A stretch of DNA of 64,000 nucleotides from Choristocarpus tenellus KU-1152 (GCA_964200185.2 CAXNAD020000002.1:19209-83208); one strand, 5' to 3'; positions 28,336 through 55,982 are shown, numbered from the stretch's first letter. Made by a program: numbers and translations. The notes: generated from the letters alone by a model not told the origin.

Positions 28336-31300
28336 CGTGAGAATAGGAATATCATCATCACTTTCCTCTTCCTCCTGTGAATTAGATAACTCCACCTCAT
28401 TACCCAACTCCAGGTGAGCCTCCCTAATTGTCAGAACATGATATGCAGAGTGGCATCCAAAAGACAACATAATTTTGTTATGGAGGAGAGGTCACATATT
28501 TTCAGAGCAAATAAAAGGGATATTCCTAACCTGTTACTAGCTACTTCTCCTACTCTCCTCACCCAGATAATAGCACAATGACGGCCCCTACTCGGAACTC
28601 GCGTGTCTGGATTGTCTCCCCTGTCATATAGATTATATTTCGTTGTGTTATTTGAGATATCCAGACACGATCTGCCTTGTCACTATGATGAGTAAGCATT
28701 GTCTCCGCCACCCGAGTAGCAGCTGTTTTCCAGATCTGTGACATAATGAGTAACATGTGAGGTAGAAGTCCTTTATCCCATCATGTTTGGGTCACCAGCA
28801 TATAGATGCAAGTGTTGTTGTAGCAGCATTTTGAATGTTTAGCAACCATTCTGCAAATGTTATGAGATAGGGCAATAGTGCATCATGTATCCATAGTAGA
28901 CGCCTAAGAAAAGATATCTGTGTTCCAATAGCATATATGAGATCCACCTGCGGCATGCTCTGGAGTGTAATTTGATCTTGCCAGCACGGACTCCTTCTAA
29001 TGTGGGATCTTCTTACCAAGTTTCGATACATCTGTACTCCCACAAGATATCTAATCTCAAACAAAAGTTGGAAGGTTGTTTCCTATTTTTATTCCTGCAT
29101 AGGTTTCAAAGAGAGTAGTGCAATGACAGGTATGTTATGCTTGCACTACATGTAATTTGACAGCTGGGCACAGGCGCCCTGAAATATTATTACTCGTGGC
29201 AATATTGAACAATTTACTACTCTTTATCTCACTGCGATCCAACCTTCTACTGGTGAAAAAAAGAATATCTAGCATACCAGGGAATCCCCTCTTTCTCTAG
29301 AGAGATCCAGGATTTGTCATCAGACAGTCAAATCGTATCTTCTCCCTCACAATTTAAACTAGCTACTGGATGAAACCGTCCAAGGACATCAGACCCCAAG
29401 ATACTTGCACCTAAATATTTGCTTGCCTTTTGATTCAGCTCTGGCCATTCTTCGACAATATTGTTGAGATCATCAGATGATATCTTGAATAGGACACAGG
29501 AGCTAGTGGTCTTGATACTGGCAAGAGGTGGCTGCTTAAGAGCCCATGAAACCTCCCCAAAGAATGAGCCAATTCCCAGCTCAGTAAGGGTGATCTCTGA
29601 ACCATTGTCGTCCTGCATCAGTGGAGAGTTATCAGTATCTCAAGCCTTCATCAAAGGGGTTTGTGTCTGGAAACACTTCCATTCACAAGAGCTATGCGCC
29701 TGAATAACCTTTTGGTGACTTGGGTGTATCGAGGATACAAAATGACTCTCTCTGCTTCCCATCTTCTTCTTCCTCTTGTGGATGACCATTCATACAAAGT
29801 TATTTGCCTTTGGTGGTCAACATGGCAAGTTCTTATTGTTGAGTTAAGAGATAGTCACCCCCAAAGGAAAAAGGTCATATAAGAGAGACAGGGAGGGAGA
29901 GGAAGAGAAATATAGGCATCTGACTTTTGTGGATGTTGCCGAAGCCTGTCTTGCAGTGCAAGACTGGTTCTATTCCTGTTGCTGCTGAATAAAATGCTCT
30001 AAATGCTCAGACTTTCTCCGCAGACGAGGTACCAGGTTCGTACCAGGTTGTCCATTTAGTTTCATTTCACCTCACCTTGCGGATGACCTTAACTGTCCCT
30101 CTTGCCAGTACATACACGCTCGTGTTGGCTTCATTCTGTTGTATCACATAGCAATTGCGTGGCATCAACATGTCTTCAAATAATCCAACGACCCTCTCCA
30201 TTTTATTATCATCTATGTTCTGCATCCATTCCACCTGCACATGGGTGGAGGGAAAAAACCTCACATGAAACATGTCTTGAATTGTCAAAAAATATTTATC
30301 TGGGGCGCATAATTTTTAACCATCCACTTCTTTATGAAAGACGCTGATGCTTCCGTGAAAAAAGGGGTGAGTGAGGTTCTAGATTTTGACATGTCTACAG
30401 AATCATGGATGGAAGTTGAGGCGCAGTGTGGTCAACCTGCTTGAGTAGTGTGATCTTGTCTGGCATGTCCAGGAGGGGAGGGTCAAAAATAAGGTGCTTC
30501 ATTTGTGTTTCCACAGCTGCTAGCATCTTCTCAGCTTCTTGTTTGTCAAGCATACCCTCGTGGTAAAGGTAGCTGATGGTCTTGTGCTGCTTGTTGAGCA
30601 CAGTCTAGGGCAACAAATATAAGCAAAGATTGCAAAGGTGCAGTTCAGCAAAGGATAACAAAGTGAGATGAATCGATTTGGCTTATCATGTACTTTGCAG
30701 CACTATGTACTACTACTTTAACTACAATTAATGATAGTGACAAAAGTGTTGGATACATTGTGTTTAGTAGTAGTTATTCAAATAGTGGGGGAAAATACTG
30801 CATGCATGGACAAATAGACCAGTATACTACTATGCTATTGGGATTAGACAACTTTGGACTGAGAGTAAAATTTCGTTGACAAGTGTACATAGCCAGGTTA
30901 GTATCTTTGCTATTTTTGAATAATTTTGTACTGCGCTACTCCCAAGTACTTCTACCCTCGACAGGCACAAGACATCAACATTAATATTTGTGTTGATCCT
31001 TTTTGTGAGGTGCTTCAAAAGTTGCTAAGAGACAAAGGTGTTCTCCCTATGTCACAAGAGGCGTTCATCCTGCTTGATCACAATAATAATTACAATCAAG
31101 ATGCATCTACCTTTGGGTAGCATAAATCAGTCATTATGTTTACAAGGAGTGTTACTCAAACACTGAAGGGGCTTTCCCCTTAGCAATTTTCAAAACAAAT
31201 TAAGACTTCTTTGATGCAACGTTTTATTTGTTTTGATTGACCCTCCTGCTCCCTCCACCAACCACAAACAAGCCATACCATAATCAAGTCAAACTAGTGA

Positions 31301-34300
31301 GGAGCAATGTAAGATCAGAGTGTACTTACTTCTTAGTACATATTTGACTTGACGTTTTAACTTGGGGTGAACACATGAGGTCCAGTGACAGAAAAATTCC
31401 AGGATTTTTTGGGATGAATCTTACCCAGCAGCATATTCAAAATTCACTTGTACTGCAGAAGCTTCAACAAAGAACTTTTCTCGAGAATTTTCAAGCACAT
31501 GGCATCAAAGTGAATCAGTAGCAAAATAATATCATTACTCAAGCCCACCATGATTACTAGCCACATGATATGTCTCATGGTGGTCATGGTCCCACAAGCA
31601 GTGAGTGCTGGTAGTGTGAACAATGTATATGGATGCACAAGATCTAATTTTTTCAATCCATCTGAGAGGTATCTGGCAACTATATATGGAAAGGTCCAAC
31701 TGAGAAACAATACATTGTCTACATGAGCACATCAAATGCCCCACAAAAGGCATGATCCCTTGTGTGCAATCATTTGATTGTTATATAATCATTATTTTAA
31801 TACAACCACATCTGGGATTCGAGGCATTTATCACTCCATGACCTATCGGAGGTATATCAGTGTCCATAATACAACAAAGGGTTTATTTGCAACAATCAAG
31901 AACCACTCTCTCAACTCGGAACTCTAGATATCAAGATAGCACACAATCTGAATTATCGTATCGGTGACATAAGTCAACTCCTCCACTCTCATAATTATGT
32001 GGTCCTTGATAGGCATGGTTTCCATGACCGAGATTAAATTTACATATCCATTCAATATTCACTCAATTGACCCAAACAATGTACCCCCTTGATCTGAACA
32101 GCTTTTGCAAAACCCTGTGATGTGTTACTACACCATAATATACTGGACTATAATACACTATTTTGTTACATCATTAATATAGTATTCATGATAGGAAAGC
32201 TACTGCACAAGATCAAAGGAACCAACAAACAAAAAACTGCAGTTGCACATCAACATCTATTAAAAAGGTGAACACCTCATGTGACTGTTGACCTTTTTAT
32301 TTACAGGAAATATAAGGTGATCCCTAGTCTGTAGGGATCAAGCCAGTTCTGTTGTGTGTATGCTTCTATGTTGTAGTTGGGATGGTGATCTTGCCATTAA
32401 TTGTGCTGCAAGTTGATCACATGGAATATCATCAAGTTAGGGGAGCCCATGATGGTGTGGATTGTAGGTAATGTATTGGGTCCTCTCAGGCTTGTTCCAA
32501 TCATCGTTCTCACCCCTAACCCTAACCAGTGGGAGGTATAAGAAAGAACTGTTCAGCCCATTCTTTCAGATTCACTTAGATACTTGCATTGAGGAATTTA
32601 AACACACATCACATCAACAACAGAAAGGACTTTGTTCAAGAATAGTGTCAACTCAACTCAGTAGTCACAATGTCACCTTCAACAAACAAACCAATGATGT
32701 GGTCTTCCTCTCTATATTCTTGTCCCCAACACACAAGGCAAAATTAGTTGGTTGCATTTGATCATATCTGGTGTCAGATCACACACTCACCAAATGTTAT
32801 GAAGAGGGGAAAAAAGAGGTGTTTGCTGATCAAATTTCAAGCCAAATGTGGTTCTCATTATTGATACAAGCATTTACTCTAATATATGCATTGGGTTTCT
32901 ATTTTGAGTAAGTAAAATCAGGCTGTTGAACATGCCCAGATGCCGTGTACCTTAAAAAAAAGAAAATTGTCGACAGCCAAATCATCAGATACTTGACTTG
33001 TTTTCTTGTGAACAATTTGGACTCACAGCAACAATCTACTACTCTATTTGGAGTGTGAGCTATCCATGGCTCCATTATCCAATTGTTGCAGGGTACTGAT
33101 ATTTGTTGGAAATGAGACATTGCTGCAAACCAAGTATAGTCTGATATCATCTTCATCAACTGGTAAGGGAGTCTGAGGTTTACCACTAATGCTGCATGCT
33201 AGACCCAACATACTGTTGACAGTTACTTTCAGTCATGATTGTACTATAGTGCTGACTACGCAGCAACCTTGATATTGTAGATGCAGAAAGATTTTAACAA
33301 TTTTGGTGTTGACTGGAAGGATGGTTTTATTTTCTTATCATACTATTGCCTGTATTTATTGAACATAGCAAGATAAAATTTGGTTTTAACATATTAGACA
33401 TGAAACCCCTCCAATGTTGGGGGACACGCAAATGACAGTATTGAAGAACCTACCCCCCTCCCAAGAGTGTTGACTGCTTGCTGTTGGCACTTTTTTGGGG
33501 GGGGGAAAGGAACACAGGACTTCCTTGTATCAATGCTCATGATACTCAATGCTGTACTGATGTCAATTTACTAATGTGAAAAAATCTGGGTTTGGTATTA
33601 TACTACAAAATGTTCAGCTCACTCTGTGATGTGTAAATGCATTCCAATTTTACTTGAGGTGTTGAGGTGTGAGATACATCTGTATGCAAGCGCACAAATA
33701 TTTGGTCAGACTACTCCTCCCCACCCCCCTTGCCAGAGGTCCAAATGGCACTTTGATGACATAAGCACTTCACATCAATTCATATGCCTGCTTGTGTATT
33801 TTGGAGCAAGTGGATTTACACCAAAATTGAATCCAACGCCTCATGATTGTGTCTGAAGGTGAACTTTAACTTGGGGCATATGCTCCCAGACAACACAATA
33901 TTCACAGCAAACCCACCCCTGACATATTAAAAAAATCAAAAGATTGGCGGTGTCATACACTTGTTCCAAGCTATCATTGGAAAGCTCCAACTCACCAACA
34001 CAAGATGATAGAAATCAAAATATACTCTGGTCCGTTTCCTTTGAATTTATTCTGACTGAAGCAATCTATTGTTGCTAGGAATTCATGTGGCTAACAATCA
34101 CTTGGAAGATAAATTTGAGTCCAAATTCATATCAACCTAGCCAAAACACAGGTCCACTTTTTTTTACAACTTTAAATTCCAAAAATTGACACAAAACACA
34201 CACACACACACAAAAAGTGGTTGTAGTCAATTTTAGAGGTTACTGGAGGGTCATTTTTTAGATTCAATGATGGGAAACTAGTCTATCAATTTCACAGTTG

Positions 34301-37300
34301 AATCGAATTTTTGATAGATAAAACTGACCGTAAGATAACATGTCTTTTTTTATTTACAAAGAAATTTATTTTTCTCAAGAAAATGAGGTCACTGTGACTG
34401 ACCCCTCTGAGCCGTTCTGGGTCGCTCAATAGTGATCTGAAGTAGCACCAATTGTCACACGAGGGCTTGATGCACTCTGCATGGTCCAGTGTGTACATCC
34501 TTAGAGCTGTGGTCCATTCATTAGAATATGGTCAACTACTACTGTTCATATATGTCAATTTATCTCTGGAGATAGGTGATGTTATTCAAATTCACCAAAG
34601 TATCGCAAGGGGCTCGGGACAAGCCTTGAGCATGTACCAAGTGGAATAGGCGTGGGGATTCATTGCTTATGCATCCTCCAATTGTCAAATTTAAACATGT
34701 TGGAGTACAATACTTCTGAATAATGTGCATGAACCAGGTTCAGGTTGTAGACCCCTCCATATTTCATCCTCTCAAAGAATTGTATTTCAGGATAAGAGGC
34801 GATTGGTTGTTATACAGTGTCCCCAGTCAATTTTTGATCGGAGTCTCTATAAAAAGGAAGGTGGGGACCAATGTGCATCATTTCCTCTCCTTCAGAAGGA
34901 GATACATGCCATTAAGAAGTGGATCCAAAGAGTCCTTCTCTGTCAGACAGGGTTTTACATATAAACCACAGCCCACATTTTCCGTTTGGAGGGAGGAGCA
35001 TAAAAAAACAAGGTGCAGCAGTCATAACCAAGACTGTCCATCTACATCAATCACTGTCCCCACTCAAAATTATTCTGAACATATTCATTGTGTTTTGACC
35101 ACTCGCACTAACTTGCTGTTGCAAAGGATAATTTTTTTTTTGACAATATGCATTTGGTTTTGACTTCAGAATACCATATATCTTCAGGAACTGACTTGTC
35201 TTCTCTCCAATCCAGTCCAGTCCCATCTGCTTTGCATGTCAGATATGTTCCTGATCCTTCAAGTTGCCATGTATAATAAATATGGGCATGTATAACCCTG
35301 ATTAATGGTTCATCTCTGCCTCTGGCTGATTTATTTTCCCTACACATAACCTTGCACTCCACAATATAATGGAAAGCAAACCAAAAGGTCAAGATTCCTC
35401 TCCTCGTACTTTCGCTCTAACAAGGAATTGCTTGCCAATGAGAATAAGGTATTCAAAGCATCATCACATATTAAATCTGAGATCTTAACCAGCTAATCGA
35501 ATATGAAATTTGAGGACTTCTCTCTTTTCCTGTATTCCATCTATACCAAATTGCATTGCATCAGTGATTTTTTGCAGTTGATTCAAGCTCAAGAGCAGTA
35601 TTATGGTAGCACAGACTCAGTCAAGATAACAGTGTGTTATGATCGACCAAAAGAGAGGAATAATGCTGTCAATCAGTGCAGCTACATGACTAGTCATGAC
35701 TGACATTCCTACTATACGTAATTCGATAAAATGAGGTCTGAGGGAGGAGTCAAGGAGCAGCAATGAGCAACCACAAAGGAGAATTCTAACTTATTTATTG
35801 TTGTTCCTCATCTAAGAGAGGATGACCCAGCTTTGAGATCAGCCATGAAATTTAGTCAACATTGCCTCTACTTTGAGATTAACCATGAAATTTAGTCAAC
35901 ATTGCCTCTACTTTGAAGGAACTATGAAATATTATTCCAAGCATTTGTTTAACTACATAAACAAGGGAAGACGTCCAGTAGTACATCATGCTAGCCTTCT
36001 AGCTTGAATTAGTTGATGCATGACAAAAGGGGACAAGGGCCCACCCATACATAGTATTATTACAACATTGTGGGTTTAATTGTGATCACCAGGGGCTTGA
36101 TGAAGTTGTAACACAGAAGATGCTCGAAAAACCAATTTTCACAGTCTCAGGGGTGCACAAAGCAGCATCAACTACCTATTCAACTAGTGTGGGATCATAG
36201 ATGTTTTTCAAGCAGTAACAAACACCAGAAGGAACAAAGCCAATGATCACCAATCAGACTGCAACACAAAAAGGCATTGGTTACAGCAAGCAATCTCAAG
36301 ATCTCTTTGTACACTATATGATCTATTTTCTGTTGTACCTTAGTGGTTCAATTAGTAGCACACTTGGTGGTGTGTGATCAACCCTTGAAAGGAATGCTGA
36401 GCACTCATGGTGGTGTTGCCATGTTTCGCTTGTGTTGTGGGTAATCAAATCGCGAGGTCCTCTAGACCCCCGCACTCCCAAAACACCTCAAAAGTACTGC
36501 ATCTGTACACTTGTTCTGAGCACTTACCTGTGCAGCCACAAATGTTGTCATGGAAGAAGCTATTTCCGGATACCTTTTTTGTATGGTCATCAAAATGTGT
36601 CTCACAACCTCAATATCCCTCTCAATCTGTGCTTACGAGACATCAACACGACAGGAAGAAATACCGATGTATGCAACAAGACATTGGGGGATAAGAAGTG
36701 TCAACTCATCTTTGATTTTGGAATTTCAAACTTTATAACAGAGTTATACAATATAGCCTTTGAAACCAAAACAAATGTAGAAATGTGGACCATGTCCAAC
36801 ATGGAAATGGGTACATCATATGTAAAGGGATCACAAACTAGACACCAACACAGAAACGTTCAATATAGGAAGGAGAGTTTAGAGGGGTTGGATACGAAGG
36901 TTCAAGTTGACAGATCACTGTTTCGGTTTTGAATCAGATAAGGATGTCAAACAGAGAAGGATGTCAAACAATCATGTTTTGGACACTGCTTCTCTTAGCC
37001 CAAAATAGCTGGGGATGCATCTATACCTGGTCAATTATGCTTTGGAACCGAGGGTTTTCTGTGAGGAACTCATGGAGTACTGCAAGTGATTCCTCCCGGG
37101 CTGTTAGGAACCCTGCAGCAATGTCATAACCCAGTCGAAGCTGGGGATACACTAGTCGGCGCTTGATCCTGAAAATTGACAAAGGAGTCCAATGGTTTGG
37201 TACTATGCAATAAGAGTTTGTGATAAAGTGTCTGTCAGCAATAGGTGGGTTGTACTGCAGGTATATGACATACCAATACAACATACACACAGACAAAGGC

Positions 37301-40300
37301 TTCTGGACTATTGAATGAGGTCAAGGGCTGGGTTGCGTCAATACTTCCAAAGCACACCAACCTCCTCTACAGCAAGCATTTTCATATTGTTTAAAGGGCA
37401 ACATATTCATTTAATTACTTGACAAGATAATCAAAATGATTGGAGATGGAGGGGCACATTATGTTGGTGAAAATAGTCCAAAATACTCTAGAGAAATATA
37501 TAAATAACAACTGCGTAACACCTGTACACCCATCACTTGATGGCCTTTGATAGATAGCCTTGATAGGCCTGCACTGTCCCAGTTACATTATTACAACATC
37601 CCGTATTAGAGTCAGTTACTGCTTTATTGTGAAGGCACTTTGAATTGAAACTAAAATACTAAGAAATGTTTCGAGTCAGTTGGATCACTCCACCACTTAC
37701 ATATTGTTGAGTACTATTTAGTAACACAAATTTCTACATATTGCTTTGTAGCATCAGCAGCACCCTCTGCAGCACTCTTCATTTTCACAGTAGTGATCTG
37801 TAGTGCCCAGGTTGTCACCACCTCATCACAATTTTTGCAGGCTTGCACTATGTGTGCTCCACAAATACATGAAAATGTTAGACCAAGGGCATCTCGTGGA
37901 TTTTTTTACCCTTCCCAAATGCATGAGATTTCTAATAATATATTTGATAAGAAGGGGGCTAGGTACACGATAATATGGAAAATATGGAGGAACCGTTATT
38001 GGTTACTTCAGTTTAGTTTTGACGTTCTCAGGTTTAGACATCAATATGATGACACTATCAACCATGCCAACATACACTGTAACTGGAAGAAGTTCAACGA
38101 TACAAGGGGATGCTTGGCTGGCCCACAGGTCAGTCTCCTTCCCATCAATGGGACACACATTGCTGCTTGAGTGATTAACACACAGTAACACCTGAAGGGT
38201 CTGAAGCATGACCTGATGAAATGCAAGGGATGATTGCAGGATCTTTGGCTAAAGGAAATATCAGCCTATAGAGAGTGTCAAGGATGATGCAGGTTGTGGC
38301 AAGGATTTCACTGACACTTGCAGGGCAAAGTTATCCAATTGGATACTGTGGTGGTGAAAGACAATTGACACGTGTTGTGTAGCCTCCTCATGTAGGCATT
38401 GGTGGGGGGTGTACTGTACTGTTGCAAACCTCTTTGGTTGACCGAGGACACTGCTGTCACAAGGACCTCTACATTCTACATTGGGTAACAGCGTAGTTTG
38501 TACCCTTCTAGGGGTTGGTGTAAGAACTTCAGTTAATATGGGAAACCCCAGTGATGCAAATCAGCCAGCAGGGAGATCAATGTGGGCATTTGCATCATCT
38601 TTGGGGAATAAAAGTCACCTTAGTAGTGGTCACAGAATAATAATACCACTTCTGACCAGTAGGTGTTGCTTTCACTATGTGATGACCATGTTTCTATTTC
38701 CATCACAGGCCAAACAGTTCCCAGTGGGTTGCCTCAGCACCCTATGTCTCAAATTTGATTCTGATCACATCAAAAAGTAAACCCATTGCATTACTCGCAA
38801 GTGAGTCGCATCGCATCAGAGAGGTTCACTGGACAAGTCACATGGAGGCAGTTTGCAGAGCTCTCTCTGTAAGTAAAGTAGACTACCCTCTCCTAATGTT
38901 GTACTATGAAGTATGCTGGAATATAGTGTTGGTTATACTTTGAAGTACAAATTTTGTTGGGTAGCATAGTTAATGGGCTTAATTTTTTGTTGCAAGAAAT
39001 TCAAATTTGATCCCTCAATGAAAGGAAGAGGAAATTTCTGTTAGAAAAATGCAATTACCAAGTATTGTCGATTTTCTGCCTCTGCAGTCTCTAGCATACT
39101 GTTTGTAAGGAGGGAGTAATGTTTGTAAGGAGACACTATTGTACCCTCAGGTTGCACTTGCACGCAATTTGCATTGGACAAATTAATTTTGTGAACATTT
39201 TCGTAAACTGACTACTGACAAAGTGAGAAAGAGCCTGGGAACCTCTTCCCTGTTCTCCGTGAATTACAAATCAAGCACAGTGACAAAATGCTCACTATTT
39301 TATTACAGGCACTGGGTAGTCAGGGAAAGGACCACCTGCAAATGCCATAGGGAAGTAGAGTCGGGTTAGATTGATGGAAACAGCAGCAAGAGTGAGGTGG
39401 AACCAGGTCTTATAGACAAGGGCAAGAAAACCACCAAGAGCAGGGGGATAATGAGAGCAGTTGGGACTGGGGGGCATATACCTGATCAAGAGAGCTAGAG
39501 GTGAAAGGGAGTTCTGCTGTGCTTGATGTTTGATGATGCCCACCTTAATCGGTATTTACCTGAGAATCCCTGTTGGTATAGGCCACAACAGTATTGAGTG
39601 GTCACCTAGTTGCAATTTGGTTGACAAATGCATTGTATTCCCCCCAATAAATTAACCTTAGCCGGTCACCATCCCACCTCCACCCTGCCTCACAAGATAA
39701 TACAGAGTATCTCATCAGTGAGAAGATCCTTAGCAACAGACTAAACAAGTACTCCGCAGTAAATAGTACTTTTATTTTATATGTACTTTTATTGAGAGTT
39801 TACACACTTTTATTAAGTTTATCCCTCCATGTTTGTTTTTTGATAAATGAGCACGAAATATATCATGAACCCATTGTTCTTGAAATGACCTTGCACAGTC
39901 TTCCACTATATATTTATTCCAATTTATTTGTAAATAGAAAATAGAAAATGTCGGTCATTAAATAAGTAGCACCCTTCAACCATCAATCTCTAATAAATAT
40001 TTTGATATTTAAATTTCTGCTGATGTCAAGTTGCTAACACACAAACTACCCATCAAATAGTACTTTTTGATATTAAGTAAGATTTAACCATGGGGTTTGG
40101 GTCAAGTGAAATACAATAATGTGCTGTGCTGATTTGTCTATGCTCATCAGGAACCGAATCATAGAGTAGACTGCACAAATGCCCTATGGTTAGTACGGCA
40201 CTACATTTTGTAGTCAAGGTAATATGTTGGGAACAGATAATCCCTGGTTGCCTCAGGGCACAACAGTCAACTTCAGGCCCTCAATGCACCATCATAGAAC

Positions 40301-43179: not shown

Positions 43180-43210
<31 letters not shown>

Positions 43211-46200
43211 TATATTTGGTTGTCACAGGTACAGATAGAAAGCATGTGAAGGATAAGGTGTACATAAACATTTCTGTCTTGATTGACAATTGCCAACTAC
43301 AATACTAAAATTGTACATAAAAATAAAGTATGCTGAAAGCATTAAAATGATCAATACTACCTAAGATTCCTGTAACTTCTTGTATGTGTAGTTTGACTTG
43401 GACCATGGACCACATCCAGAGCCTCTATATATATACACATATTGTCAAATATTGAGATACCACTGTTCCTCTGGGGCAGACAGTTGCGTCACTATCTTCC
43501 CTGGTGAAACAGTGGAAGAGTATTTTTAAATTGACAAAATCAGAGGTTGGGTACTATCCAGCATAGTCCATGGACCATCATCCCCACTAATCACACACTT
43601 GCCCTAAGAAAATCATCTCAATATTTGTATCTTCCCTTGAACCCGTTCCTGGACCCCTCTCTCACCCCCTCTTTATTTTCCCACTGTTGGGAGGGAGCCC
43701 TAAAAGCAGTCCAACCAATGGAACAGTGATATCTCAATATTTGACATGTAGTAGTACACAAATTGAATGATCAGAGCTTGCAATATATTGTACAGTTTAG
43801 GAGCTCAGTGCTAGTATATTTGTAGTAAGAAGAGCTTCGAGATGGGAATCACTAATCTTGCTGTTCCTGACCAGGTGGTGATACTAAAATAGTTTTCCAG
43901 GGTATTTGATAGAAACTTGACTAAATAATTTTGCTATTTTTGCCCTACAGGCGATGATACAGTGAACATATGTTATGCAGGGTATGTATAAGTGTTCAGG
44001 TAATTGTCAGTACATAGTTATCTGCCATTCATTCCAAGAAGAGCAAACACCACCTCTAACTATACTACATGATGTGATCTATTTTAAATCATGTCACAAT
44101 AAACAAGTGCAGTAGATCCAACATTATCCAAAGGTGACGTTTCTTAGTGATAACCTTTATTTTTTTGAGTGACCTAGATCGACTACAGAGACACTCCAGA
44201 GGATTGAAATAATATTATCTTTGAAAAACCTAGATGCTACAATATCGTTCTTCAGACAGACCATCACACAATGGAAAGAGGTAATTTCACACAAAATAAA
44301 ATGTAGCAGTGGCAGTAGAGCCATCAACTCTGTGAGGTACCTACGCTGAATTGTTTTTTTTTCTTTGGTTAGCATTTCCAACAATTTTGTGTGAAGTGTT
44401 ATCTCTAGAACTTCAATTTGATCTGCCATCCCAAGCTTATCTGGTACCATAGTAATGAAAATGTAGGGATTTTCATGGACTGTATAAAAATGATAATTAC
44501 ACTTGGAATATTTTTCCACATTGGTCAACCTTGCCCAATGTGAGGTCAAACATCTAGCCTCACACTCAAATAATTTAAGCGGGAGTCAATCTTCACTATC
44601 AAGTTTACAAATACTGGTACAGTAGCACTAATTTTACACTTAGCTCATAATTGTTCTTCAAACTGCATGTTGACTTGCATTTTCTGCAGATTGGAGGTAG
44701 GGTACATATGGAAGTAAGCCTCTACACAATCAAACTCATACAGTGATCTTGTCTGCGTTTTTTATTTTGGTCAAAAATCTTTTTCAAAGTACTTTGGATT
44801 ACTATGTTTCAATCAGGTTTACAATACTGCGAATTACTCTCCTCAGTGTCTAGGAATGCAATTGACCCCATGGTATTGCTGTACATTTGATTATCTTCAA
44901 TTTAGTACCTAGAGGGTCGGTCCCCTGGAGGGCATCTGTTTTCCCATACTTTATTTCATTTGACTTTGCAGTTGAACCCAAAATAGTGAGGGATCAGGTA
45001 TCCTGTGTATGTGTAGACTAATCCAAGAAGCAAGCAAAGATAGGGTGAATGCCCATTTAGCATCCCTTGGACCCCACTATGCCAGACTCCACAAGATACT
45101 CCCTCCCACCCCCTACTCCACTTGATTGTGAGTGTGAGTGTGAGTGTGAGTGTGAATGTGAGTTTCCCTATGTCTTGAAGTATTGCGTTCAGATGCACAA
45201 ACACAAGTATAACAGTACATGATTTACGAGGATTGTTGGGGGTGAACCCTTTACAATTTGATCTCTGCATGTTTGTAGTTGCCCACCTTGATAGGAAGGT
45301 ATAAATACTGTAGGGTGCAGATTGCAATGTTATAGAGAGAATGAAACTTAGCATTCATCTGACTGGGAAAACATCCTGAAAACCTGTTGACCATGTGTAA
45401 TAATCCTTTCTTATTGCATCCATTGATACACCACAAGTACACTTGTTGACTAGCTCTTTTTCTGGGATCTTATCCGTGCTAGACTGGTGCAAACTATAGC
45501 TTAATTCTTTGCATTTGCTTCACTTTCAGGAGCAGACCTCTCGGAGAAGTCCTTCCATCAACTGAGTCTCAACAGACAATAAACAAAGGTGATATATTAG
45601 ATGCCAATACACACATAATTGGATTTTGACTTTTGACCCCGAGTGGTGCATCAGATGACATGGGTGATACGAGGAAATGAGACAGTGTCCTTCACATTTT
45701 AGGATAGTTCTCAAGAATGGTTAGTCGAATCACCTGTAGGCTTTGATGACAACTAACCCTCGGGAATGGTTTATATTGCACTAGATCCCTTCAAATTACC
45801 CAGTACATAACTAGGGTGGACACTGGGCTACCCTCAAGGCTTAGTATGGGCATGCAGTTCTATGCAACAACTGGGCCACTTGACCCCTGTCTAAGGGAGC
45901 AACTTCTTGGCACCCCATCAACCTCAACACAACTCATAGAAAACTTCAGGGTGGACTTTGTGGGGCTTGAGATCTTATCTTTGCCATTTTTCGTCCACAA
46001 TGTTGGGGTCTAAGCTGGAAGAAGTGGACCACCCACTTGCAATAGTTTTGACACAAAGACAAAAAACCATCCAATCAGGGAGGGATCTTTTCATTTTTAC
46101 CTCTTTGATTTGGCTATCTAGTCCAGTTATGATCTGTACTAATGTGTGTTTGTACCTACTGGGGTTGGGACTTACTCTCATCCATTCACCTGTAGAGCTT

Positions 46201-49200
46201 ATACCCATGGTGTGTACACCAACCTTACTCTCATCCAAACTAGAGTGTACAAATAGGAGTACCCTTACCTAACCCTAAACCTTAAGCAATTGGTGGAATC
46301 TATAATCACAACATCAACCAACCATCAGCGATCATGACTGAATGAAGACTTAATCTAAATCACTAATGTTTTGATCACAAGGTCGCACTGAACCACAGCC
46401 TTGGAGGTTTTAGACCTGGATGTGTTCTTCAATATTTTATGAGAACATGAATAAGAAAGATTATGAATTATTGAAGCATATCTACTTGCAATAGCTTTGT
46501 GCATGACAATCTCTTCCTAGCGTTTTCCTTGCATTCCACTCATTTCAATATAAAATTATCATGCACTCAGTACATCAGACATGAACAAACACAAAGTAAA
46601 AATATCACTGAGCTAGCTACAATGTAGATTGAAGCTCAGGGTACACTTGCACTGCCTGCTAAATCCAAGTTTAAAACACAAAATATGGGGAAACATATTA
46701 TGTGTGAGCCTCAACTGCAGGCTCAATGAGATCAGTTTGTAGTTCAACCTGGATGACCTTCAACTCTGTGTTGATCAATTCGCAGATGAAACAGAAATTT
46801 GCTTCCCCTTATCAGAAGCAATATGCTAAGTGTTTTGGCTTCAGTTCCAAATGAACTCACAAACGTTAGTGACAGACCTCTACATAATACAACTTAAGAG
46901 AGTGGAAAGGGGGGGAATTGTGATGTCACAAATCAACTATCAGATATCTCTGATCTCTGTACATGAATGTCAGAGCTGAAATGGTTGGAACATTTTTTCT
47001 TACCTCAGGGGAAACTTTGTTTCGGCTCACAACGGACTTTGTGGCATGCTTGTAGCGAGCAAGGTGAATGTCATGAAAGTGCAGCCCTTCTGTGTGTATG
47101 CGAACCTCTTGCACAAGATCCACAAAACGCACTACTCGTAGTAGCCAGACAAATGTTGCAAAACTCCTGGAAATTTACAAGGAGTGAAATTTTCACTGGT
47201 TAAAGCACATTCAAGTGGAACTTGATGTATGCCAGGTTGCTCAACATTAAGTATTCAGCATAATCTTCCACAGGTTGATGTAGAGAGATCACATCAGACA
47301 GAATTGAGTTGTGTATACCAGAATCTCTCTGACAAAAATTGTGTAACACATATACTGTTCAGACTCACCCAAGAGTGTTCCACCCTGATCCCAAAGTAAT
47401 GATGTTCAGCATCACCACCACCATATCAAGCACCGACATAGGATGAGTCATGAAGGCATGCAAGTCTCCTTCAAGCCATATACGCAGACATACCTCCACA
47501 GCAAAGACAATAGTCCAAAACCCCAGCCATGCCTGAAGGGTATGTCGTGCGCATCTGCAAGAGTTAAGAAGGTCCCTGGGTGATACTGGAACATGTGTTG
47601 TAGACAAATCAAATCATCTCCAGGCCTGACATTGTATTGTCAGAACAACCACACAGCACACACAACTAGGCAGCAACAGCACATGAAAAAATCGTAGTGC
47701 ATAAAAGGTGAGTATCTTACAAAGTTATTATAGGATACCACTTGGTACGGGGCCTGTGGTGGAGACAACCTGGAACAACCAATCCCACTTGCCTCATATA
47801 TCCAAGAATTGGGACCACTCAGATGTGCTAGAACAGGAGATAGGACACAGGCTGACAAAAGGCCAGCAAGCCACTGGGGAGAACGCAGCCCTGCAGCTAC
47901 CTGTGGTGGGATGGTGTGATACATGTGAACCATATGCAGTCATTCTGTGGGTCGGTCTATTGCTTCTTCATATTTGTACATGGAATCCAGAAAATTGAAT
48001 CATCTCTCTTCAACCTTGTCAGAGGTAAAAATTTGAGTCAAGGTATGTCGTATGTTACCTTGTCGCGCTGGCGGTCAATTGGAGAGTCCTGACTGTGGAG
48101 CCCTTCCACATGAAAATGTGATAATGTATGAGAGAGATGCTTCCATTCATCCAGGCTACACATATTGTCTATAGCCATGTCAGCCACATGCATCATTTGC
48201 TTTGCAGCTGCACGGCATAAAACTCCATTGCTGAACTGCTTCCAGTAGCTGGTACGTTTGGAAGAAGTTGGTAGTAGAGTGCAAGGAAGCAGTTGGTTAT
48301 CTAGTCCTGTTGGAAGATACATTGAATGTGTAAGGCTCTGACTCTGCTCTAAACCCGAGATAAATGCAGAATGTTACTACCTGTTCTTGCAGACCATGTG
48401 TACTCGTCTCCTCGCCTCCAGCTCCAACAGAGCCTCATTGGTCCTCATATCCATATTCGCAGGTATTTGCTTGACCTAGCAAGCATGGGTAGCAAGTAAA
48501 ACATTTTTCATGTTACCAAAAAGGAGGTGTGCAAGGATGATTTACTGCTGAACGCGGATTACTGATTTCATCAAGTCTCTACAATTGGATAGTACTACTC
48601 ACACACCTTTGGTGCAGGCACTTCCAGATAGTAGTGCCGAGCAACATCCCATACGGTACAGTCAAATAATCGGTTCTTGCGCAAGACTTCCTCCTGTTGC
48701 TTCCCAGAATCATTGAGTGTCCGCATGGCCTACACATACAGACACACACACACAAACATATACATACATTGAAAAGTTGGTTCAATGAGCAATTCAACAA
48801 CTTGGGTGACTTCGTTGCTCGTTGCTATGGGATTATGTTCTTGTATCTTAATCTGAAGTCAGCAATTGAAGTTGTTCAGTACATGCAAGTTTTTCAGGTT
48901 ATTTGTGCTTGCGACCTCAATTCGTTCAGAGCACACCTGGTTGAAAACAACAAGCCGTGAGGCAGGAACGGTGTCCAAACCAACCAGGACAAGGAGGTGG
49001 TGCATTGTTGTTCCATTCACTGCCAAGGTCAGGACCACAATGCCTGCTGTGTGAAACATGACCTGGTTGTGATGGCAAAGACATCTGGTTTTTGCAAGGT
49101 CTCCATCATAGGCAAAGAAGTTATAGGTCTATACCAGCAAAAAAAGTTAGTGCAGATCAACGTTTACAAGTAGTGATATCCACAGGTAACCCAAGTTGGT

Positions 49201-52200
49201 GCAGTGATTAAGGAGAGATTGTTGGGCGGTTACCTTGCTGGTGATAGTGCTGCAAATTGCCTCCTCTTGAAGAACAACCAGTGCCAGTGCCAAGCCCACA
49301 GCACCCCTCAGCCCTCCCCATACTCCCACCAAAGTATCACCCACTTCCACATCAATCTTCATGACCTACACGTTGTGTGTGTTGAGAGAGTAATGAATAA
49401 AGCAATAGTCTAGATCAGGCCCTGTAACTACTACAGAAATATTGTAGAACTGCAACAAAGCAACAAGATAACTACCTCATGCTAACCTTTCCCTAGTATA
49501 TAGAAGGTGTCACCTTGTTGGGATCTTGGACAAAGCCAACAGGAGGAAAAATAGCAAAGGAAGAAAAAGTACAAAGTTCTACTGAAAACATAAAACAAAA
49601 TGCAGAAGCTTCTAACCGTGATATGTATATATATATATATATATATTCCAGGTCACAGCAGTTCTATTGGTATGCTGGTCATTTGTATCTACACCACACC
49701 GTCATTTAAACGTCCACATACTCCTAAAATGCTGTTGATATTTTACTGATCTAGGTGACACTTGTGACAAGACAGTTGAAATGCAACCTTTGAAAAAACT
49801 GATCTGTACTGTTGAAATTGTCTAGTGAATGCCTGCCCCCCGAAACACTGGGAGCTACACCACGAAACAGTACAAACCATGTCTTTTTGTTCCTCTCAGG
49901 CTTAGTTTGGTTATTAAAGTCTATATCCTCAGCGAAAACACTATTTTTCCGTTGGATCTGTATCCTGGTTATGTTATCATTCCACAAAAGGAAATGACCG
50001 TTCTCAGGGTAACAACTTTCAATTATTCCAGTTTGAGGGGCTGACATCAATCATCCTAAAATATCCTGAGGTGGGCAGACTTTCACAGTTGGACACATTT
50101 TAGGACCAAACTAAGAATGTTTCCAGCATCATCTTGATTTCCTAGTGCAAGGTATAAATAACACTCCAGAGGCTTAATGTGTTCCAATTGATTTATATCA
50201 AGGGTAAATTCATTCTTGTGTTCCTCTTTCACTCAAGATTAGAGCTCACACAAGTCGTCAGGAGAATATAATATATAGTCGTGTAATGATGGTGTTCAGG
50301 TGGGTGATTGTACTTCCACGGTTCTTGGGAATGCATGAATGTTTTAATTAACATGAACAAGTCATTCTTGGTTGGGTTTTAGGCAAGCTTTTGGAAAGAG
50401 GTAGTATCATGTAAAATTCACAACACTCAGTGCTTGATTGTCTAGCAACAGATCTTCACATTTTCTCAATTTGCAGTGTTTCAGCACATAGTTGAGTTTA
50501 TTTCTCAAGCTTTTGCAATTTCCAAATGTTGTCAAGGTGCTAGCATGGATCAGTTGGAAACAAAAACCTCTACCAACACTTCTGGAGGTAATAGATGCCA
50601 AATCTACATGTGTTTCATAGCATGTTGGTACCAACATAAAACGTAAGTTCATAGCAGCAGAAGAGATTTTTGGAACAAGCCACAAACCCAAATATAGGTG
50701 TACGCACATTCCACAAAGTTGTATTGTAACCTCATCATCCAGGTATGAAAACAGGAGGTGGTAATAAACCCATGAAGATGAGGACAACAGTTTAGCAAGC
50801 TTATGTGGGGGGTTGAAAAGCTGGATGCTCTACAGTTGTCTTTAAGCCTCACCTACCCACCTTCTTCTTCCACATATGTGCGCTAAAGCACAGTATAACG
50901 CGGATCAGGTGAAGCACCACATACACCACAAATAAGATTAACACGTCAGTAGCACTGGATTGGGGCAGGTCAATCATGATAACCACACCAGCGATGACAA
51001 AAACCAGGGTGTTACCAAGAAATGCCAGGAGCTCCCAAAACTCCTCCAAAAAGTGCTCGACCTTGAAGTGTGGCAGCATCAAAATTTATAGGGCTACTGC
51101 CATTAAGCTCTTGGAAGTGAAACGTCAGGACAAAGGATACAGCCACCAGAGTGAATAGGAGTTGGTGACAAGAAATATGTCATTCCCTTCAAACATGTTG
51201 GTCATTTGGAATCCCAGGGCAATCTTGGTGCAAATCAGTCAGCTCAAGAACACTTGAGGCATGCAAACTTGAGGATCGTAACCCCCAAGCTATTCAATCC
51301 AGTGCTGCAATATAGTACTGTGTAGCGTAGTGCAGATCAGGGATTGGGTTCCTGAGTTTGCAGGCAAGCCAAGCTGCGTCGAATACAACCAGCCCTAAAT
51401 GGAGCAAGAGCTGAGGAGTCAACTGCAGGTTAGCATTTGAAACTCCTTTCAAATGAAAACTTAGATGAGGGTAGCTGCCGGCGAAGACTGAGCACAAGGC
51501 TGGGCTAAGTAAGTAGTTTATGCAGTAAATCATATAAATATCTATATGAGTACTGGTATTGTCAACAATGTTGTCACCCACAAGGGGTGTGACAAAGTCG
51601 ATTAAATAAAGGCCCACCTTGAACCACAGGGCAATTAGATTGACCCCTAGAATGCACACAAGATAATGTAGATGCTAGGGTCTGAATGAACGGTGCCAGT
51701 TTACCAAACTACAACGAAAACCCCAAAATGAAGGCTCCCATATGGTGTGTTTCATACTCTCATTTTCAATCAATGGTGACGTCTGATATTCTTATTATCT
51801 CTGGCTGGTCACAGTAACACACACAAAGAGAGTCACTTGGCAACCCAGTTTAGTAACTGACCCTTTCTATGCTTCAGCAAACCAACTATACCTTGTAATG
51901 ATCTACAAGCAAAGTAGCAACAGGATGGATGGTAAGTAGATCTATACTTCTCCAATAGAAATCAGGCTATACATTATCATTGGGAGGTGTGACTGTCCTC
52001 TTGCGTCACTTGAAGACAAACAACCGCTGAAGTAAGTACCTCTATGATGTTGAGATTTGATTGGACAGCAGGCAAGACAATGAGTGTTGGTTCTAACTCC
52101 TTCAACCCATGTTTAGTGGAGTAAATATCCTTACATAGTGGCAGGAGATTTGGAGCAGATTGCTTCACACTTGGAGAGGTTGTTAATCTACTTTCAAGTC

Positions 52201-55200
52201 ACTAACTCTTGCAGTAATCAAAAATTAATCACCATTTGACTATAGATAGATACTGCGAAGAAACATTGTGACTGATGGAGCGATATGTTGTATTTACAGA
52301 ATTATGAAGTGTGTGCAAAACAATGCTTTCTGGATGTAAACAGAAAATTGGTATTGCAAACAAAAAGCAACAAGCAACAAGTAACAAGCAACAAGTAACA
52401 AGCAACAAATGTATATTATAATCATCAAAAATATTATGAAACATGGGTATGCATGGTACAACTCTGCTATTGTAGTATCCAGAATATGGTAAGTTTGCCT
52501 GTGAAGCAAATTGGAGGATATAGTTTAGAATTGACCATACTGACTTGCCAAGCGACAGCACATTTGACCATTAGAATCCTAGCAGTCAGGAGTCCATTTT
52601 GGGCCTGTTAGGCCAATTTCCTCCTTTTAAAATCACCTTCCTCTTTTATCTCCCTGCCTGGGCCAAATCGAAAGGAAAATCACCCACAATACAGGAATCA
52701 AACTGGGGTGTCTTACAATAATCCATCAAGCCCTAAATGAATGGTCAGTACAAAACGCGCCCCTACTAGGATACTATGGTCCACTTGAGCAAAGTTTTAA
52801 CCACCTCTTCCGTTTTAATTGCATTGTACACAATACAGTTTGGTTGTTACAAACTAAGTAACACACTAACCTGAGGAGAAATCTTGGTTCGTCCCACTGA
52901 ACCCATGTACAATCCGAGTGCCACAACAGCCAGAACCCCAGACACTTCAAGGGGATCGGGAAGGACATCCACAGATGACAATCACAAGGGAAAAAATCAA
53001 CTGAATCAAGTGGTGGACCATCGTTGCAAGGAATATGATACACATATACAGACTCATGATCTTTGGACAAGATCTCTTATACAAATAACTGATAAATCAC
53101 CATACTGCCTTGCAAATTAATTGCGCAAGGTTGACCCATCAACTCACCTCCAATCACATTCTCAGCAACAAAAAAACATATGTATGTTCCAGCAATTGTT
53201 ATGGTGATTTCCACAAGAACATCATTGAAGACCAATCCCTGTTGAGAAGGAAACATGTTGCATCAAAAATTGGTCTGAGAGGCATATCAGTTGTTACTAA
53301 CTCAGGGGCAATGTAAGCACAACATAAGAAAATGTACCTTTTACTTGAAAGTGAGTATAAAATGTACGCGCTTTTTTGTTTTATTTTTTTTGGCCACCAG
53401 CATCTGTCGGTTGTGAGTTTTTTTTTTTTACTAGGAAGAAGCGGGAGAGGTCGGTCGGTTGTGGTGATCGTTAGATCACAATAGTTTGAATCAATCATTT
53501 GAATTGTCCTAGTGAACCCAGGTGGATCCATTTTGGTGTGTGGTTCCCCAGACCCTTGAAAAACATCAAAGCTGGGTCTCAGACGCGCAGAAATATCATT
53601 TAAAATGCATTTTAGTTTTAGGGGAGGCTTTATAGAGTTCTTGCAAATTGCCTCACCAGCCAGAAAGTAGAAGCTGCACCAACACAGAGACCCAAGATTA
53701 TACCCCCAATCGACATTTTAAGAAATGTCAACAGGATTTGTGTGGGCGATTCAGATTCTTCTCCTGATACACTGGAGAGGATAGTCACAAAGATAACCAA
53801 TGCTGTGCCATCATTTAGCAGTGATTCCCCTGCAACGATATTTCAGGCAAGTGCATGCTGTATCAGATGACAAAGAGAGGATCACACATCCATCCACAGA
53901 ATAAGCACAAAGTGCTGCCCTGACTCTGGAAGGTTGCGGAGTGAACATAGTGAAGGAAGGAGTGCTAATTCTAGCATTGCCCCCAACTACAGACAAGTGT
54001 GCTTATATTTGAGGAAGGGTATGTTTATGTTAAATTTTCTGTCTAGCTTTCTACGGACCAGTATAGTATTTGCAATATGATATACATCTTCAAAAAGTTA
54101 ATACAAAGTAATCTGGAATAGAAAGGTTCAAGACATTGAAATTCCCCATCCCTTTTCTTATCCTACACCTTGCCTTGATATTAGTTCATTCATGGAAATA
54201 GAATTCTGCAATGAGTAGTTAAGTCCACCATTCGAGCAACACAGCCCAGTGCCCCACCTTCTATTGAAATGGAAAGATCTGCCTTGACACCCAGCTCCTT
54301 GAGCAGAGCAACAACAGCAACTGGATCAGTAGCGCTGAGTATACACCCAAGCAAGAAGCCATCCATATTGACCCATTTTCCACCCTCACAATGCTCAAAC
54401 TCAGCGGACTCCATCCCCTTTGTCAAGGTAGGATGTGTTTCATTTATTACAGAGTGGATGTTGCAGCGAGCTTCATGTAAAAAAAAAATCATTGTATTTT
54501 CAACATACTTGGAGTGTCCTCCTGATAAAGTATGCTTGTCCAAGCAGACACTCGAGTATAATTGGCATATTTCTTCCAGAATATAGTTGCGCTGGGTCAA
54601 CACATGTACACTAAGTACCTGGATCATGACATTGATGACAACACCAACAGCAGCTGTGCCAAAGAGAAGACCTGGCACAGCCATGAAAAGTACCGTCCAC
54701 TTCACCTATGGGAAATGCAAGATCATTTGAAACATGACATCTTCAAGAGAATTGCAATGTGAAGTAAACACAGCAGGCATGATTGTGGGGTATTGCAAAT
54801 CAAGGCATCAGTTCTGTTCTTCAAAATATCTCTGTTGGAAGAAAAGTTCTCTCTGAAAATTCCAATGAATCTCACCTTATTGAAAATGTTCCACTCAATG
54901 GCGAAGGCCGACTCAAATATGAGTGGTGGCAAGAAAACATGCAACAGTAGATGCGGATCAATGGACCCAAGCATTTGAACACTGATTCCAAGGACTTCAG
55001 TTTCCTCTCCCCAACCCATTCTGATTATCATCACACAAAGGAAAGGTCGAGTTTGAATCATAAGTTGGCAGTCAAGGTCATGATATTTTGTGCTTTCATG
55101 GCAAGGGCTACCTTGGAGAGTGCATCAAGTGTATTTTCTTGGAATACTGCAATCAGCTGTATGGGATAGAATAGACTAAGGCAAATGCAATGTACAAAGA

Positions 55201-55982
55201 CAAATACAAATGGTCAAAAATATATTTATAAGATACCATATCATGCACAGCAAGTTAGAAGTATTATGACAAAGTGGTTCATTAATCATTCTTGTGTCTT
55301 CATTCTTCAATACATGACATCCCCACCCATTACCGTCCACACCTTTGAAAAAGCACACCTCACCCCATTTCCTTCAAAGTGTTATGATTAACCAAATGTT
55401 GGCTTAACCTTTCACCCACTCTGGAGGAAAACTATTACGATCAACCCTTCCCTATAGCCGTCCTGTTCAGCACAGTGCCCAATTGATCAATATCCCTGCC
55501 TGTTGCTCCATAGATTTTGACAATTGCTACAAACTTAAGAGATACACTTTCGTTGTCACTTTTGGCAAGACTCGAAATGATGTGCTTGAGTCTATGCGTT
55601 AGGTCACCTTGCAAAGTACCCCATTATTCCTCCAGAGAAGAGCAGAAGTACAGTGTATGGAACAGGTATTTGTCGACATGTATGCCGGATGAAAGCACCA
55701 ATGATGAGCACAATGAATGGAGCTAGGATGGCATTCTGCAAAACGTTGAGAAGTTCCATGATACAGACAAGGGGTAACACATTTGTTGTTTAGCGTTCGC
55801 TCTCTTGATCTATCTTTGTAACATAAGATTGAAGATCCTACCTTACGGTTGGGTGAAGAGCGATGAGAAGAGGGGAAGGGGGCACTGACTCGTGTAGAAG
55901 GTACGCAAGCAAGATTTGTGCATTATTGTCTCACATGTGCACTTTGGTGTGAGGTCTCGTTGGTGTCGGTGGAACCCGACAT
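28336..55982 (-). CDS. Na+/H+ exchanger of SOS1/SLC9C type with voltage-sensor domain and cyclic-nucleotide-binding domain; at least 25 exons, extreme 3' end unresolved
   Basis: Exons 55935-55982 (tentative start), 55608-55735, 54876-55020, 54619-54705, 54258-54417, 53657-53829, 53148-53238, 52871-52944, 50861-51061, 49234-49365, 48937-49062, 48607-48729, 48381-48475, 48059-48248, 47793-47900, 47369-47532, 47004-47166, [tentative linker exons near 42942-43014, 42482-42631, 41790-41990], 37027-37168, 36528-36626, 30437-30604, 30076-30234, 29427-29612, 28563-28735, 28336-28423. CPA1 motifs: PYTVLLL, IDPHLLLHVFLPPLIFESAF, LSATDPVAVVALLKELG, IEGESLLNDG, VSGVLAVV, FWELLAFLGNT, WGGLRGAVGLALAL, LTLAVNGTT. 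Cytosolic motifs: SYWKQF, LGYDIAAGF, YPEIA. Confidence 0.93.
29427..30234 (-). other. Cyclic-nucleotide-binding (homology) domain of the exchanger
   Basis: YVIQQNEANTSVYVLARGTVKVIRK-DDNGSEITLTELGIGSFFGEVSWALKQPPLASIKTTSSCVLFKISSDDL is the cNMP-binding fold pattern. Confidence 0.88.
35831..35916. repeat. Tandem duplication, 40-bp unit x2
   Basis: CTTTGAGATYARCCATGAAATTTAGTCAACATTGCCTCTA at 35831 and 35871. Confidence 0.9.
43443..43746. mobile_element. MITE-like element, same family as 25966-26313
   Basis: TGTCAAATATTGAGATACCACTGTTCC (43443-43469) and GGAACAGTGATATCTCAATATTTGACA (43720-43746) are 27-bp inverted repeats with one mismatch. The internal TTGACAAAATCAGAGG...CCCCACTAA.CACA.ACTTGCCCT is shared with the other copy. 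Confidence 0.7.
47100..47900 (-). other. Voltage-sensor-like domain (S1-S4) of the exchanger
   Basis: S1 WLAGLLSACVLSPVLA; S2 FWTIVFAVEVCLRIW (F..E...R/K); S3 PMSVLDMVVVMLNII (conserved D); S4 FATFVWLLRVVRFVD. Confidence 0.8.
52365..52408. repeat. 7-bp minisatellite (AAGYAAC)n
   Basis: aagcaac aagcaac aagtaac aagcaac aagtaac aagcaac. Confidence 0.85.

Follow-up and report, generated by a model that had tools for sequence, protein, structure and literature searches.

A predicted Na+/H+ exchanger gene with SLC9C-like architecture, including a candidate voltage sensor, in a brown-algal-type genome

Are Na+/H+ exchangers (NHEs) governed by a voltage sensor confined to animals? Voltage-sensor NHEs have been described as occurring "exclusively in Metazoa", none being found in any non-metazoan, although it was allowed that such organisms might yet turn up (Romero and Nishigaki 2019), and SLC9C1 has been called the only known transporter regulated by voltage-sensing domains (Yeo et al. 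2023). The question is raised by a locus in a stretch of 64,000 nucleotides of Choristocarpus tenellus KU-1152 (GCA_964200185.2, CAXNAD020000002.1:19209-83208), the whole of which is referred to here as the window. A literature search with incomplete journal coverage returned no report of a voltage-sensor NHE in algae, stramenopiles or other protists. The original prediction, made from this DNA alone, had proposed an exchanger in which the NHE domain, cytosolic helices, a voltage-sensing S1-S4 domain, further helices and a domain for cyclic-nucleotide binding (CNBD) follow one another in a non-animal genome. Exon-by-exon Pfam and PDB matches show this order to be real and collinear with the sea-urchin protein (SpSLC9C1), and, judged from its sequence, the gene most likely represents a true counterpart of the SLC9C architecture outside animals; its S4 is poor in charges and its CNBD is predicted to be blind to its ligand.

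The gene was modelled with an exon-chaining script which combines splice-site and codon-usage scores, forbids in-frame stops and was run between homology-supported anchors. Twenty-two exons join into one open frame with zero stops, and the introns are GT-AG throughout except for two GC-AG introns. An in-frame stop is present at 55792-55790, upstream of the ATG at 55759, and since no AG occurs between the two, this ATG is the first usable start. The locus first proposed (28336-55982) holds, with its ends moved to 55759 (ATG) and 28279 (last codon before the TAA); the motifs named in it are all present, but on the minus strand, with SYWKQF at 48233-48250, LGYDIAAGF at 37108-37134 and YPEIA at 36558-36572. 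The features of the gene are as follows.

28276..55759, minus strand: whole coding span of the 22-exon model, from the ATG at 55759 to the TAA at 28278-28276 (3228 nt, 1076 codons)
48937..55759, minus strand: exons 1-5 (55759-55608, 55020-54876, 54705-54619, 54417-54258, 53829-53657) and exons 6-10 (53238-53148, 52944-52871, 51061-50861, 49365-49234, 49062-48937), Na+/H+ exchanger transporter domain, model residues 1-447, with about 12-13 hydrophobic helices
48059..48729, minus strand: exons 11-12 (48729-48607, 48343-48059), cytosolic helices preceding the voltage sensor, including SYWKQF
47793..47900, minus strand: exon 13, S1 helix (hydrophobic residues 594-612), phase 0 in and out, GC donor
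47369..47532, minus strand: exon 14, S2-S3, with a Pfam Ion_trans match and the charge-transfer-centre residues
47004..47166, minus strand: exon 15, S4 and 32 cytosolic residues, ending in phase 0
36528..37140, minus strand: exons 16-17 (37140-37027 with LGYDIAAGF; 36626-36528 with YPEIA), helices between S4 and the CNBD linker, placed by frames and splice sites
30437..30604, minus strand: exon 18, ICH7-like helix with K835 followed by the linker DPPLLDMP, placed by PDB phmmer
29427..30234, minus strand: exons 19-20 (30234-30076, 29612-29427), cyclic-nucleotide-binding fold, placed by Pfam cNMP_binding
28279..28735, minus strand: exons 21-22 (28735-28563, 28423-28279), beta-rich stretch and acidic tail, 3' end uncertain

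Some junctions in this model are less certain than others. Exon 4 has a weak acceptor (54417), exon 20 ends in a GC donor, and the best-scoring chains share exons 21-22 but end differently in the last exon, leaving the 3' end uncertain; the model used reads exon 22 through to the TAA, and position 28336 is an alternative donor within this exon. An extra exon proposed by the script (38212-38076), which lacks homology and is unneeded for the frame, was set aside. The hydropathy of the translated model shows a block of transporter helices at residues 6-445, then a hydrophilic stretch, then exactly four hydrophobic segments (594-612, 621-639, 651-669 and 674-692), and none later. In a second sample, independent contigs span the sensor and the exons next to it with zero differences, and the sensor region is therefore not an assembly join; a third run, from another organism, yielded no matching reads. 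A search of the genome for a paralogue of the exchanger gene returned only the gene itself.

Pfam scans were run exon by exon on single stop-free segments of the minus strand. Five exons match the Na_H_Exchanger profile collinearly (profile positions 30-70, 105-143, 138-194, 249-306 and 315-350) between 55124 and 49150, and in phmmer comparisons against all PDB chains the transporter exons match SOS1 and SLC9C1 only. Exon 5 scores better against SOS1 (E 2.3e-8) than against SLC9C1 (E 6e-5), and for exon 8 the E-values are 5.5e-5 (SLC9C1) and 1.3e-4 (SOS1). The transport residues named for SLC9C1 by Yeo et al. (2023), namely the aspartate of transmembrane helix 5 (TM5), the ND motif and the arginine of TM12, are intact in the translated product as D158 in SATDP, N188-D189 in LLNDG and R381 in GGLRGAV, respectively. 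The Pfam matches and these residues together place the protein among the CPA1/NhaA-fold transporters with an electroneutral ND motif.

The cytosolic helices which follow the transporter domain lead directly into the candidate sensor. The SYWKQF segment of exon 12, whose acceptor at 48343 is in phase 0, matches residues 587-621 of SLC9C1 only (E 0.007-0.009), SOS1 being absent among the PDB phmmer matches of this exon. Downstream, the stretch 47004-47900, in which the voltage sensor had been predicted, resolves into three exons (47900-47793, 47532-47369 and 47166-47004). The central one, exon 14, matches positions 37-85 of the Ion_trans profile, corresponding to S2-S3, at 47613-47368 (E 1.9e-6; 27.7 bits against a cut-off of 25), and among PDB chains it matches S2-S3 of the CaV1.1 repeats and of NavAb (best E 2.3e-4). 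Furthermore, 27 of its 30 nearest clusters in a language-model feature search are Ion_trans. Its S2 reads F-A-V-E-V-C-L-R, giving F629-x-x-E632-x-x-x-R636, and its S3 contains V-L-D-M with D655, such that a charge-transfer centre composed of F629, E632 and D655 aligns with its equivalents in CaV1.1 and NavAb. The S4 helix encoded by exon 15, LLRVVRFVDLVQEVR at 47144-47100, carries R684, R687, D690, Q693 and R696. Splice sites are strong at all six junctions of the three-exon cassette, which spans 435 nt in phase 0 on both sides, a layout that, as far as exon structure can tell, is typical of a shuffled module. At the DNA level, S1-S4 stands in frame between helices, and the exons bordering it match stretches of SpSLC9C1 before and after the sensor of that protein. 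In the sea-urchin protein the sensor, with S1 around E698 and S4 at K800-K815, lies between the two matched stretches 587-621 and 904-964, and the algal S1-S4 therefore occupies the place of the SLC9C1 sensor.

A second organism also has the sensor exons in conserved form. When the S2-S3 exon was compared with 1.8 billion representative proteins, one true relative (P0001) and two spurious matches to repeat proteins emerged; since a match in this search needed approximately 35 bits, distant orthologues would escape it. The relative is an 80-amino-acid open frame, a cluster singleton, on a 1006-bp Logan contig (L001; 54.5% GC and no CpG depletion, 0.96) and is 76% identical to exon 14. On this contig, the S1 and S2-S3 exons are present together with 13 codons from the beginning of the S4 exon, and their AG acceptors and GT donors agree in position and phase with the splice sites of the window, the donor of the S1 exon in the contig being GT. 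The start of the S4 exon, including R-x-x-R, is kept with an equal split-codon phase, as are F-x-x-E and the S3 aspartate, and the introns differ in length (198 and 147 nt in L001, 260 and 202 nt in the window) and cannot be aligned. Over 102 codons the two sequences share 72% amino acid and 67% nucleotide identity, with proportions of nonsynonymous (pN) and synonymous (pS) differences of 0.18 and 0.79, the latter saturated. Because intron positions, phases and motifs are retained and pN lies far below pS, the S1-S4 exons are, on this comparison, coding sequence under strong purifying selection in two distant lineages. At positions 128-184 of the same contig, upstream of its S1 exon, one frame shows a weak likeness to the last part of exon 12 (I..WCS....H..FHV), at approximately the intron distance seen in the window, with a low score that may reflect chance. 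A metagenome scan with the S2-S3 alignment found no relative. Two other explanations of the locus were rejected. No stop or frameshift occurs in the 22 exons and pN is far below pS, against a pseudogene; a chance pattern is opposed by the 22 in-frame, stop-free exons and by the conservation of the voltage-sensor exons in a second organism.

The 3' half of the gene continues the resemblance to SLC9C1. Exons 16-17 have no PDB or Pfam match and were assigned by position only. Exon 18 matches SLC9C1 residues 904-964 (E 6-7e-4, against E 1.3 for SOS1) and, if the chain index is taken as the residue number, places K835 opposite Lys939 of SpSLC9C1. This lysine is the strictly conserved autoinhibitory contact by which helix ICH7 blocks the transporter, and it is followed by a proline-rich stretch (Yeo et al. 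2023). Both elements, the ICH7-type helix with its basic residue (K835, on the same numbering assumption) and the proline-rich linker (DPPLLDMP), are present in the algal model, in which 151 residues separate the first S4 arginine from the ICH7-like lysine, compared to 136 (R803 to K939) in SpSLC9C1.

The cNMP_binding (cyclic nucleotide monophosphate-binding) profile is matched in two parts, positions 5-32 at 30315-30070 and positions 34-87 at 29639-29331, the latter with E 8.4e-8 and a score of 32.5 bits (cut-off 27.5). With this, the domain check proposed for the locus gives Na_H_Exchanger, Ion_trans and cNMP_binding in order, the last two above cut-off. The best PDB matches of the CNBD exon are the CNBDs of HCN channels (SpIH and HCN1-4; E 1e-5 to 1e-4). 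In its phosphate-binding cassette, FGEVSWALKQPPLAS at 29561-29517, KQPPLAS aligns to the RGRRTAS of HCN, such that the phosphate-binding arginine is replaced by proline and the next threonine by leucine, with FGE retained. The CNBD fold is present without the cassette arginine for cyclic AMP (cAMP) binding, and the replacement of this arginine by proline makes canonical nucleotide binding unlikely. Canonical control by cAMP or cyclic GMP (cGMP) through this domain is similarly judged unlikely from the sequence, and the CNBD probably serves as a dimerising and stabilising scaffold. The CNBD-like domain of SOS1 is not known to require cyclic nucleotides.

One transcription unit comprising both halves is favoured by several indirect observations, for which two further features are relevant.

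55501..56750, strand not assigned: CpG island over the ATG at the gene's 5' end, probably the promoter, with a CpG observed/expected ratio of 0.65-0.72 against a window median of 0.26
37141..47003, minus strand: intron 15, 9863 nt, with no detectable gene and two old dispersed repeats

No other CpG island occurs between 18500 and 55500 in the window, and the other islands that were checked lie at the gene 5' ends of an RNase III/PWI pair and of a phenylalanyl-tRNA synthetase (PheRS)/TIP41 pair, one island being shared per pair. Exon 15 ends in GAG/gtaaga in phase 0, and exon 16 begins in phase 0 after atccccag/. The seven longest open frames in intron 15 have no Pfam match and the intron has no internal repeats; for the two long introns together (9863 and 5923 nt) likewise neither a Pfam-detectable gene nor internal repeats were found. 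A genome-wide DNA search of intron 15 revealed two short dispersed repeat families, at 39794-40187 and 43439-43697, present at approximately 50 places on other contigs at 65-86% likeness, with a few short matches of up to 100%; they look like old elements of the short interspersed (SINE) or miniature inverted-repeat transposable (MITE) type. The window as a whole is strongly CpG-depleted, with islands at 501-2500, 7251-8000, 9751-10250, 15501-16000, 17001-18500, 55501-56750 and 63501-64000.

The host of the gene was assessed from the assembly itself (164 Mb, 27310 contigs). The chlorophyll a/b-binding family is matched at least 63 times, and one intact fucoxanthin chlorophyll a/c protein (FCP) gene, on contig L004, encodes a product approximately 91% identical (363 bits) to FCP17 of PDB 9YGV, the photosystem I-FCP structure of the giant kelp Macrocystis pyrifera; against the best diatom FCP the same product scores 208 bits. 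The tetranucleotide make-up of the window is like that of the FCP-bearing contigs (r 0.90-0.94) and unlike that of L001. The claim of a non-animal genome is thereby upheld, the FCP matches and composition being of the fucoxanthin-containing brown-algal type; on these grounds the genome belongs to a brown alga or to a closely related sister lineage, not to an animal. An animal contaminant contig was considered and rejected, as the window agrees in composition with the FCP-bearing contigs and the exons resemble plant SOS1 at least as closely as SLC9C1. Upstream of the FCP gene (L004:1005-2031), an overlapping frame carries an AQAF-type motif, as in red-lineage bipartite plastid-targeting signals, the overlap suggesting a short intron or frame change near 1486-1568. 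The depletion of CpG with islands at gene 5' ends points to CpG methylation, which would be unexpected in most brown algae and could indicate an early-branching or sister lineage.

Several observations weigh against reading the locus as a single gene for a voltage-controlled exchanger. The sequencing runs containing it are of DNA type only and come from one study, so that the exon junctions are deduced from the DNA sequence, and between the S4 exon and the 3' half lie introns of 9.9 kb and 5.9 kb. Only one related fragment occurs among the 1.8 billion representative proteins, exon 14 has no match at E below 1 to the sensor of SLC9C1 itself in the PDB phmmer comparison, and neither the S1 nor the S4 exon is by itself matched in Pfam or the PDB. 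S4 furthermore has two arginines in every-third register rather than a run of several gating charges, compared to six basic residues (K1-K6, about 3 e0 measured) in SpSLC9C1, S1 lacks an acidic or asparagine counter-residue, unlike E698/N691 of SpSLC9C1, and skipping of the cassette would preserve the frame. Mammalian SLC9C1 likewise lacks several S4 charges (Windler et al. 2018). The likeliest alternative accepts the tripartite protein and takes S1-S4 as a structural module resembling a voltage sensor that has lost, or never had, the ability to sense voltage; it might anchor the protein in the membrane or respond to a lipid or ligand, and the exchanger would be controlled, like SOS1, through C-terminal autoinhibition and phosphorylation. 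The two arginines followed by aspartate and glutamine at the next positions, the missing S1 partners, the S4 exon without a match and the transporter exon closer to SOS1 would all fit such a module, and loss of the ligand-binding arginine of the CNBD would be expected of a scaffold-only tail. However, F-x-x-E, the S3 aspartate and R-x-x-R have all survived a divergence great enough to saturate synonymous sites, and the algal model retains the lysine of ICH7 and the proline linker, through which S4 is coupled to the transporter in SLC9C1; we regard a non-sensing S1-S4 as possible, though rather unlikely.

The other two alternatives divide the gene itself. The main product could be SOS1-like and sensor-less, with exons 13-15 constituting an alternative cassette or a nested gene for a voltage sensor alone, in line with the phase-0 boundaries of the 435-nt cassette (the exon 12-16 join stays in frame), the GC donor of exon 13, an in-frame ATG just upstream of exon 13 in this genome, a stop met 28 codons after read-through of the exon-15 donor, and the failure to find any protein with exons 13-15 in public protein sets. 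In the related contig, however, the conserved stretch starts precisely at the AG acceptor preceding the S1 exon, with no in-frame ATG seen upstream of it; neither a CpG island nor a promoter-like feature is found near the cassette, its six junctions are strong, and the sensor sits exactly at the place it holds in SLC9C1, leaving a sensor-less main product improbable. Still less probable in our view is a pair of same-strand genes, a 5' one encoding NHE and voltage sensor and ending near 47000, and a 3' one encoding helices and CNBD and starting near 37300. The 9.9-kb gap after the S4 exon, the lack of database matches for exons 16-17 and an in-frame methionine upstream of exon 16 are what two genes would produce, yet the gap has no CpG island, although the other gene 5' ends checked in the window have one, and no Pfam-detectable gene; exon 15 has a perfect phase-0 donor and exon 16 a good phase-0 acceptor, and the match of the 3' exons to SLC9C1 904-964 falls at the distance from S4 that would be expected. 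We consider a single tripartite protein likely. Given such a protein, genuine voltage control is an about even or slightly favourable prospect, and the complete reading, a single gene encoding an exchanger of approximately 1076 residues in the SOS1/SLC9C clade, with S1-S4 between cytosolic helices, a CNBD fold and control by voltage, stands a little above even.

For this voltage-controlled exchanger, a mechanism like that proposed for SLC9C1 can be envisaged. The ICH7-like helix (K835), resting on the transporter, would keep an electroneutral Na+(K+)/H+ exchanger inactive, and movement of S4, passed on through the clamped cytosolic helices, would release it. Any voltage dependence would be shallow, because S4 has two arginines and an aspartate at the third position. 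At the plasma membrane in sea water the protein would import Na+ and extrude H+, such that its activation would alkalinise the cytosol. A role in flagellated gametes or zoospores is plausible.

If the tripartite layout is confirmed, this algal gene would be the case missing from the survey of Romero and Nishigaki (2019). The coupling of a voltage sensor to an NHE would then appear, with moderate probability as read from the sequence, not to be an animal invention, having arisen a second time in the brown-algal lineage or already in early eukaryotes. A second origin would imply that a three-exon, phase-0/phase-0 cassette of channel type was shuffled into an SOS1-like gene at the very loop which holds the sensor in animals, and an early-eukaryote origin would make plant SOS1 the form that lost the sensor; either, if true, overturns the Metazoa-exclusive view of voltage-sensor NHEs. 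Whether the sensor-transporter chimaera arose once and was later lost in places, was passed on by transfer or evolved by convergence becomes testable. A shorter natural variant with a two-arginine S4 and a ligand-blind CNBD would furthermore be useful for dissecting how S4 movement is relayed to an elevator-type transporter, and such a protein points to fast, electrically controlled pH signalling in algae, possibly in flagellated gametes or zoospores.

The neighbouring genes in the window were identified by Pfam. An RNase III domain (973-1254, minus strand) is followed by a PWI domain (2410-2670, plus strand) with an arginine/serine-rich frame after it, and the class II phenylalanyl-tRNA synthetase core (16288-17729, minus strand) by a TIP41-like domain (21085-21402, plus strand). 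Both are divergent pairs, and the TIP41-like gene converges on the exchanger gene.

Among known systems, the ion channels provide the nearest relatives of two of the modules. The S2-S3 segment resembles CaV1.1 repeats I, III and IV and NavAb, sharing F-x-x-E-x-x-x-R, the S3 aspartate and R-x-x-R with CaV, NaV and NavAb sensors, but the algal module has no S5-S6 pore helices, lies within a transporter and has few S4 charges. The CNBDs of HCN and CNG channels include the best PDB matches of the algal domain, in which the G-E of the cassette is kept and Arg-Thr has become Pro-Leu.

SOS1/NHX7 (7Y3E, 8JD9, 8IWO), the antiporter for Na+ and H+ in the plasma membrane of plants, shares the cytosolic helical scaffold followed by a CNBD-like domain, and of the transporter exons, exon 5 is closer to SOS1 and exon 8 about equal to both proteins. 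The cytosolic domains of SOS1 and SLC9C1 are themselves structurally alike (Kalienkova et al. 2023). SOS1, however, has no S1-S4 (Romero and Nishigaki 2019), whereas the algal gene possesses the in-frame three-exon cassette, and is thus not a scaffold with a CNBD-like domain and no voltage sensor. Its cytosolic-helix exons are also closer to SLC9C1 than to SOS1 (E 7e-4 against 1.3 for exon 18).

SLC9C1, or sNHE (sea-urchin structures 8OTQ, 8PCZ and 8U6Z), the exchanger specific to animal sperm and gated by voltage and cAMP, differs in several respects. The algal protein is approximately 250 residues shorter, with a much shorter linker from ICH4 to S1, its S4 has two arginines in place of K1-K6, the S1 partners are absent, the cassette arginine is a proline, its sensor sequence is like those of CaV/NaV channels instead, and its host is an alga. 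The module order is nevertheless the same, namely NhaA-fold transporter, helices, S1-S4, helices, CNBD and C-terminal beta region, and the two proteins share the SYWKQF helix (587-621), the ICH7-like helix (904-964) with its lysine and proline linker, the ND motif, the TM5 aspartate, the TM12 arginine and an aromatic/Glu/Asp charge-transfer centre. By its exon scores, the transporter is about equally far from SOS1 and SLC9C1 and the coupling helices are closer to SLC9C1. The proposal that the gene bridges SOS1 and SLC9C agrees, to this extent, with the scores of the individual exons, one transporter exon being nearer SOS1, one equal, and the helices nearer SLC9C1.

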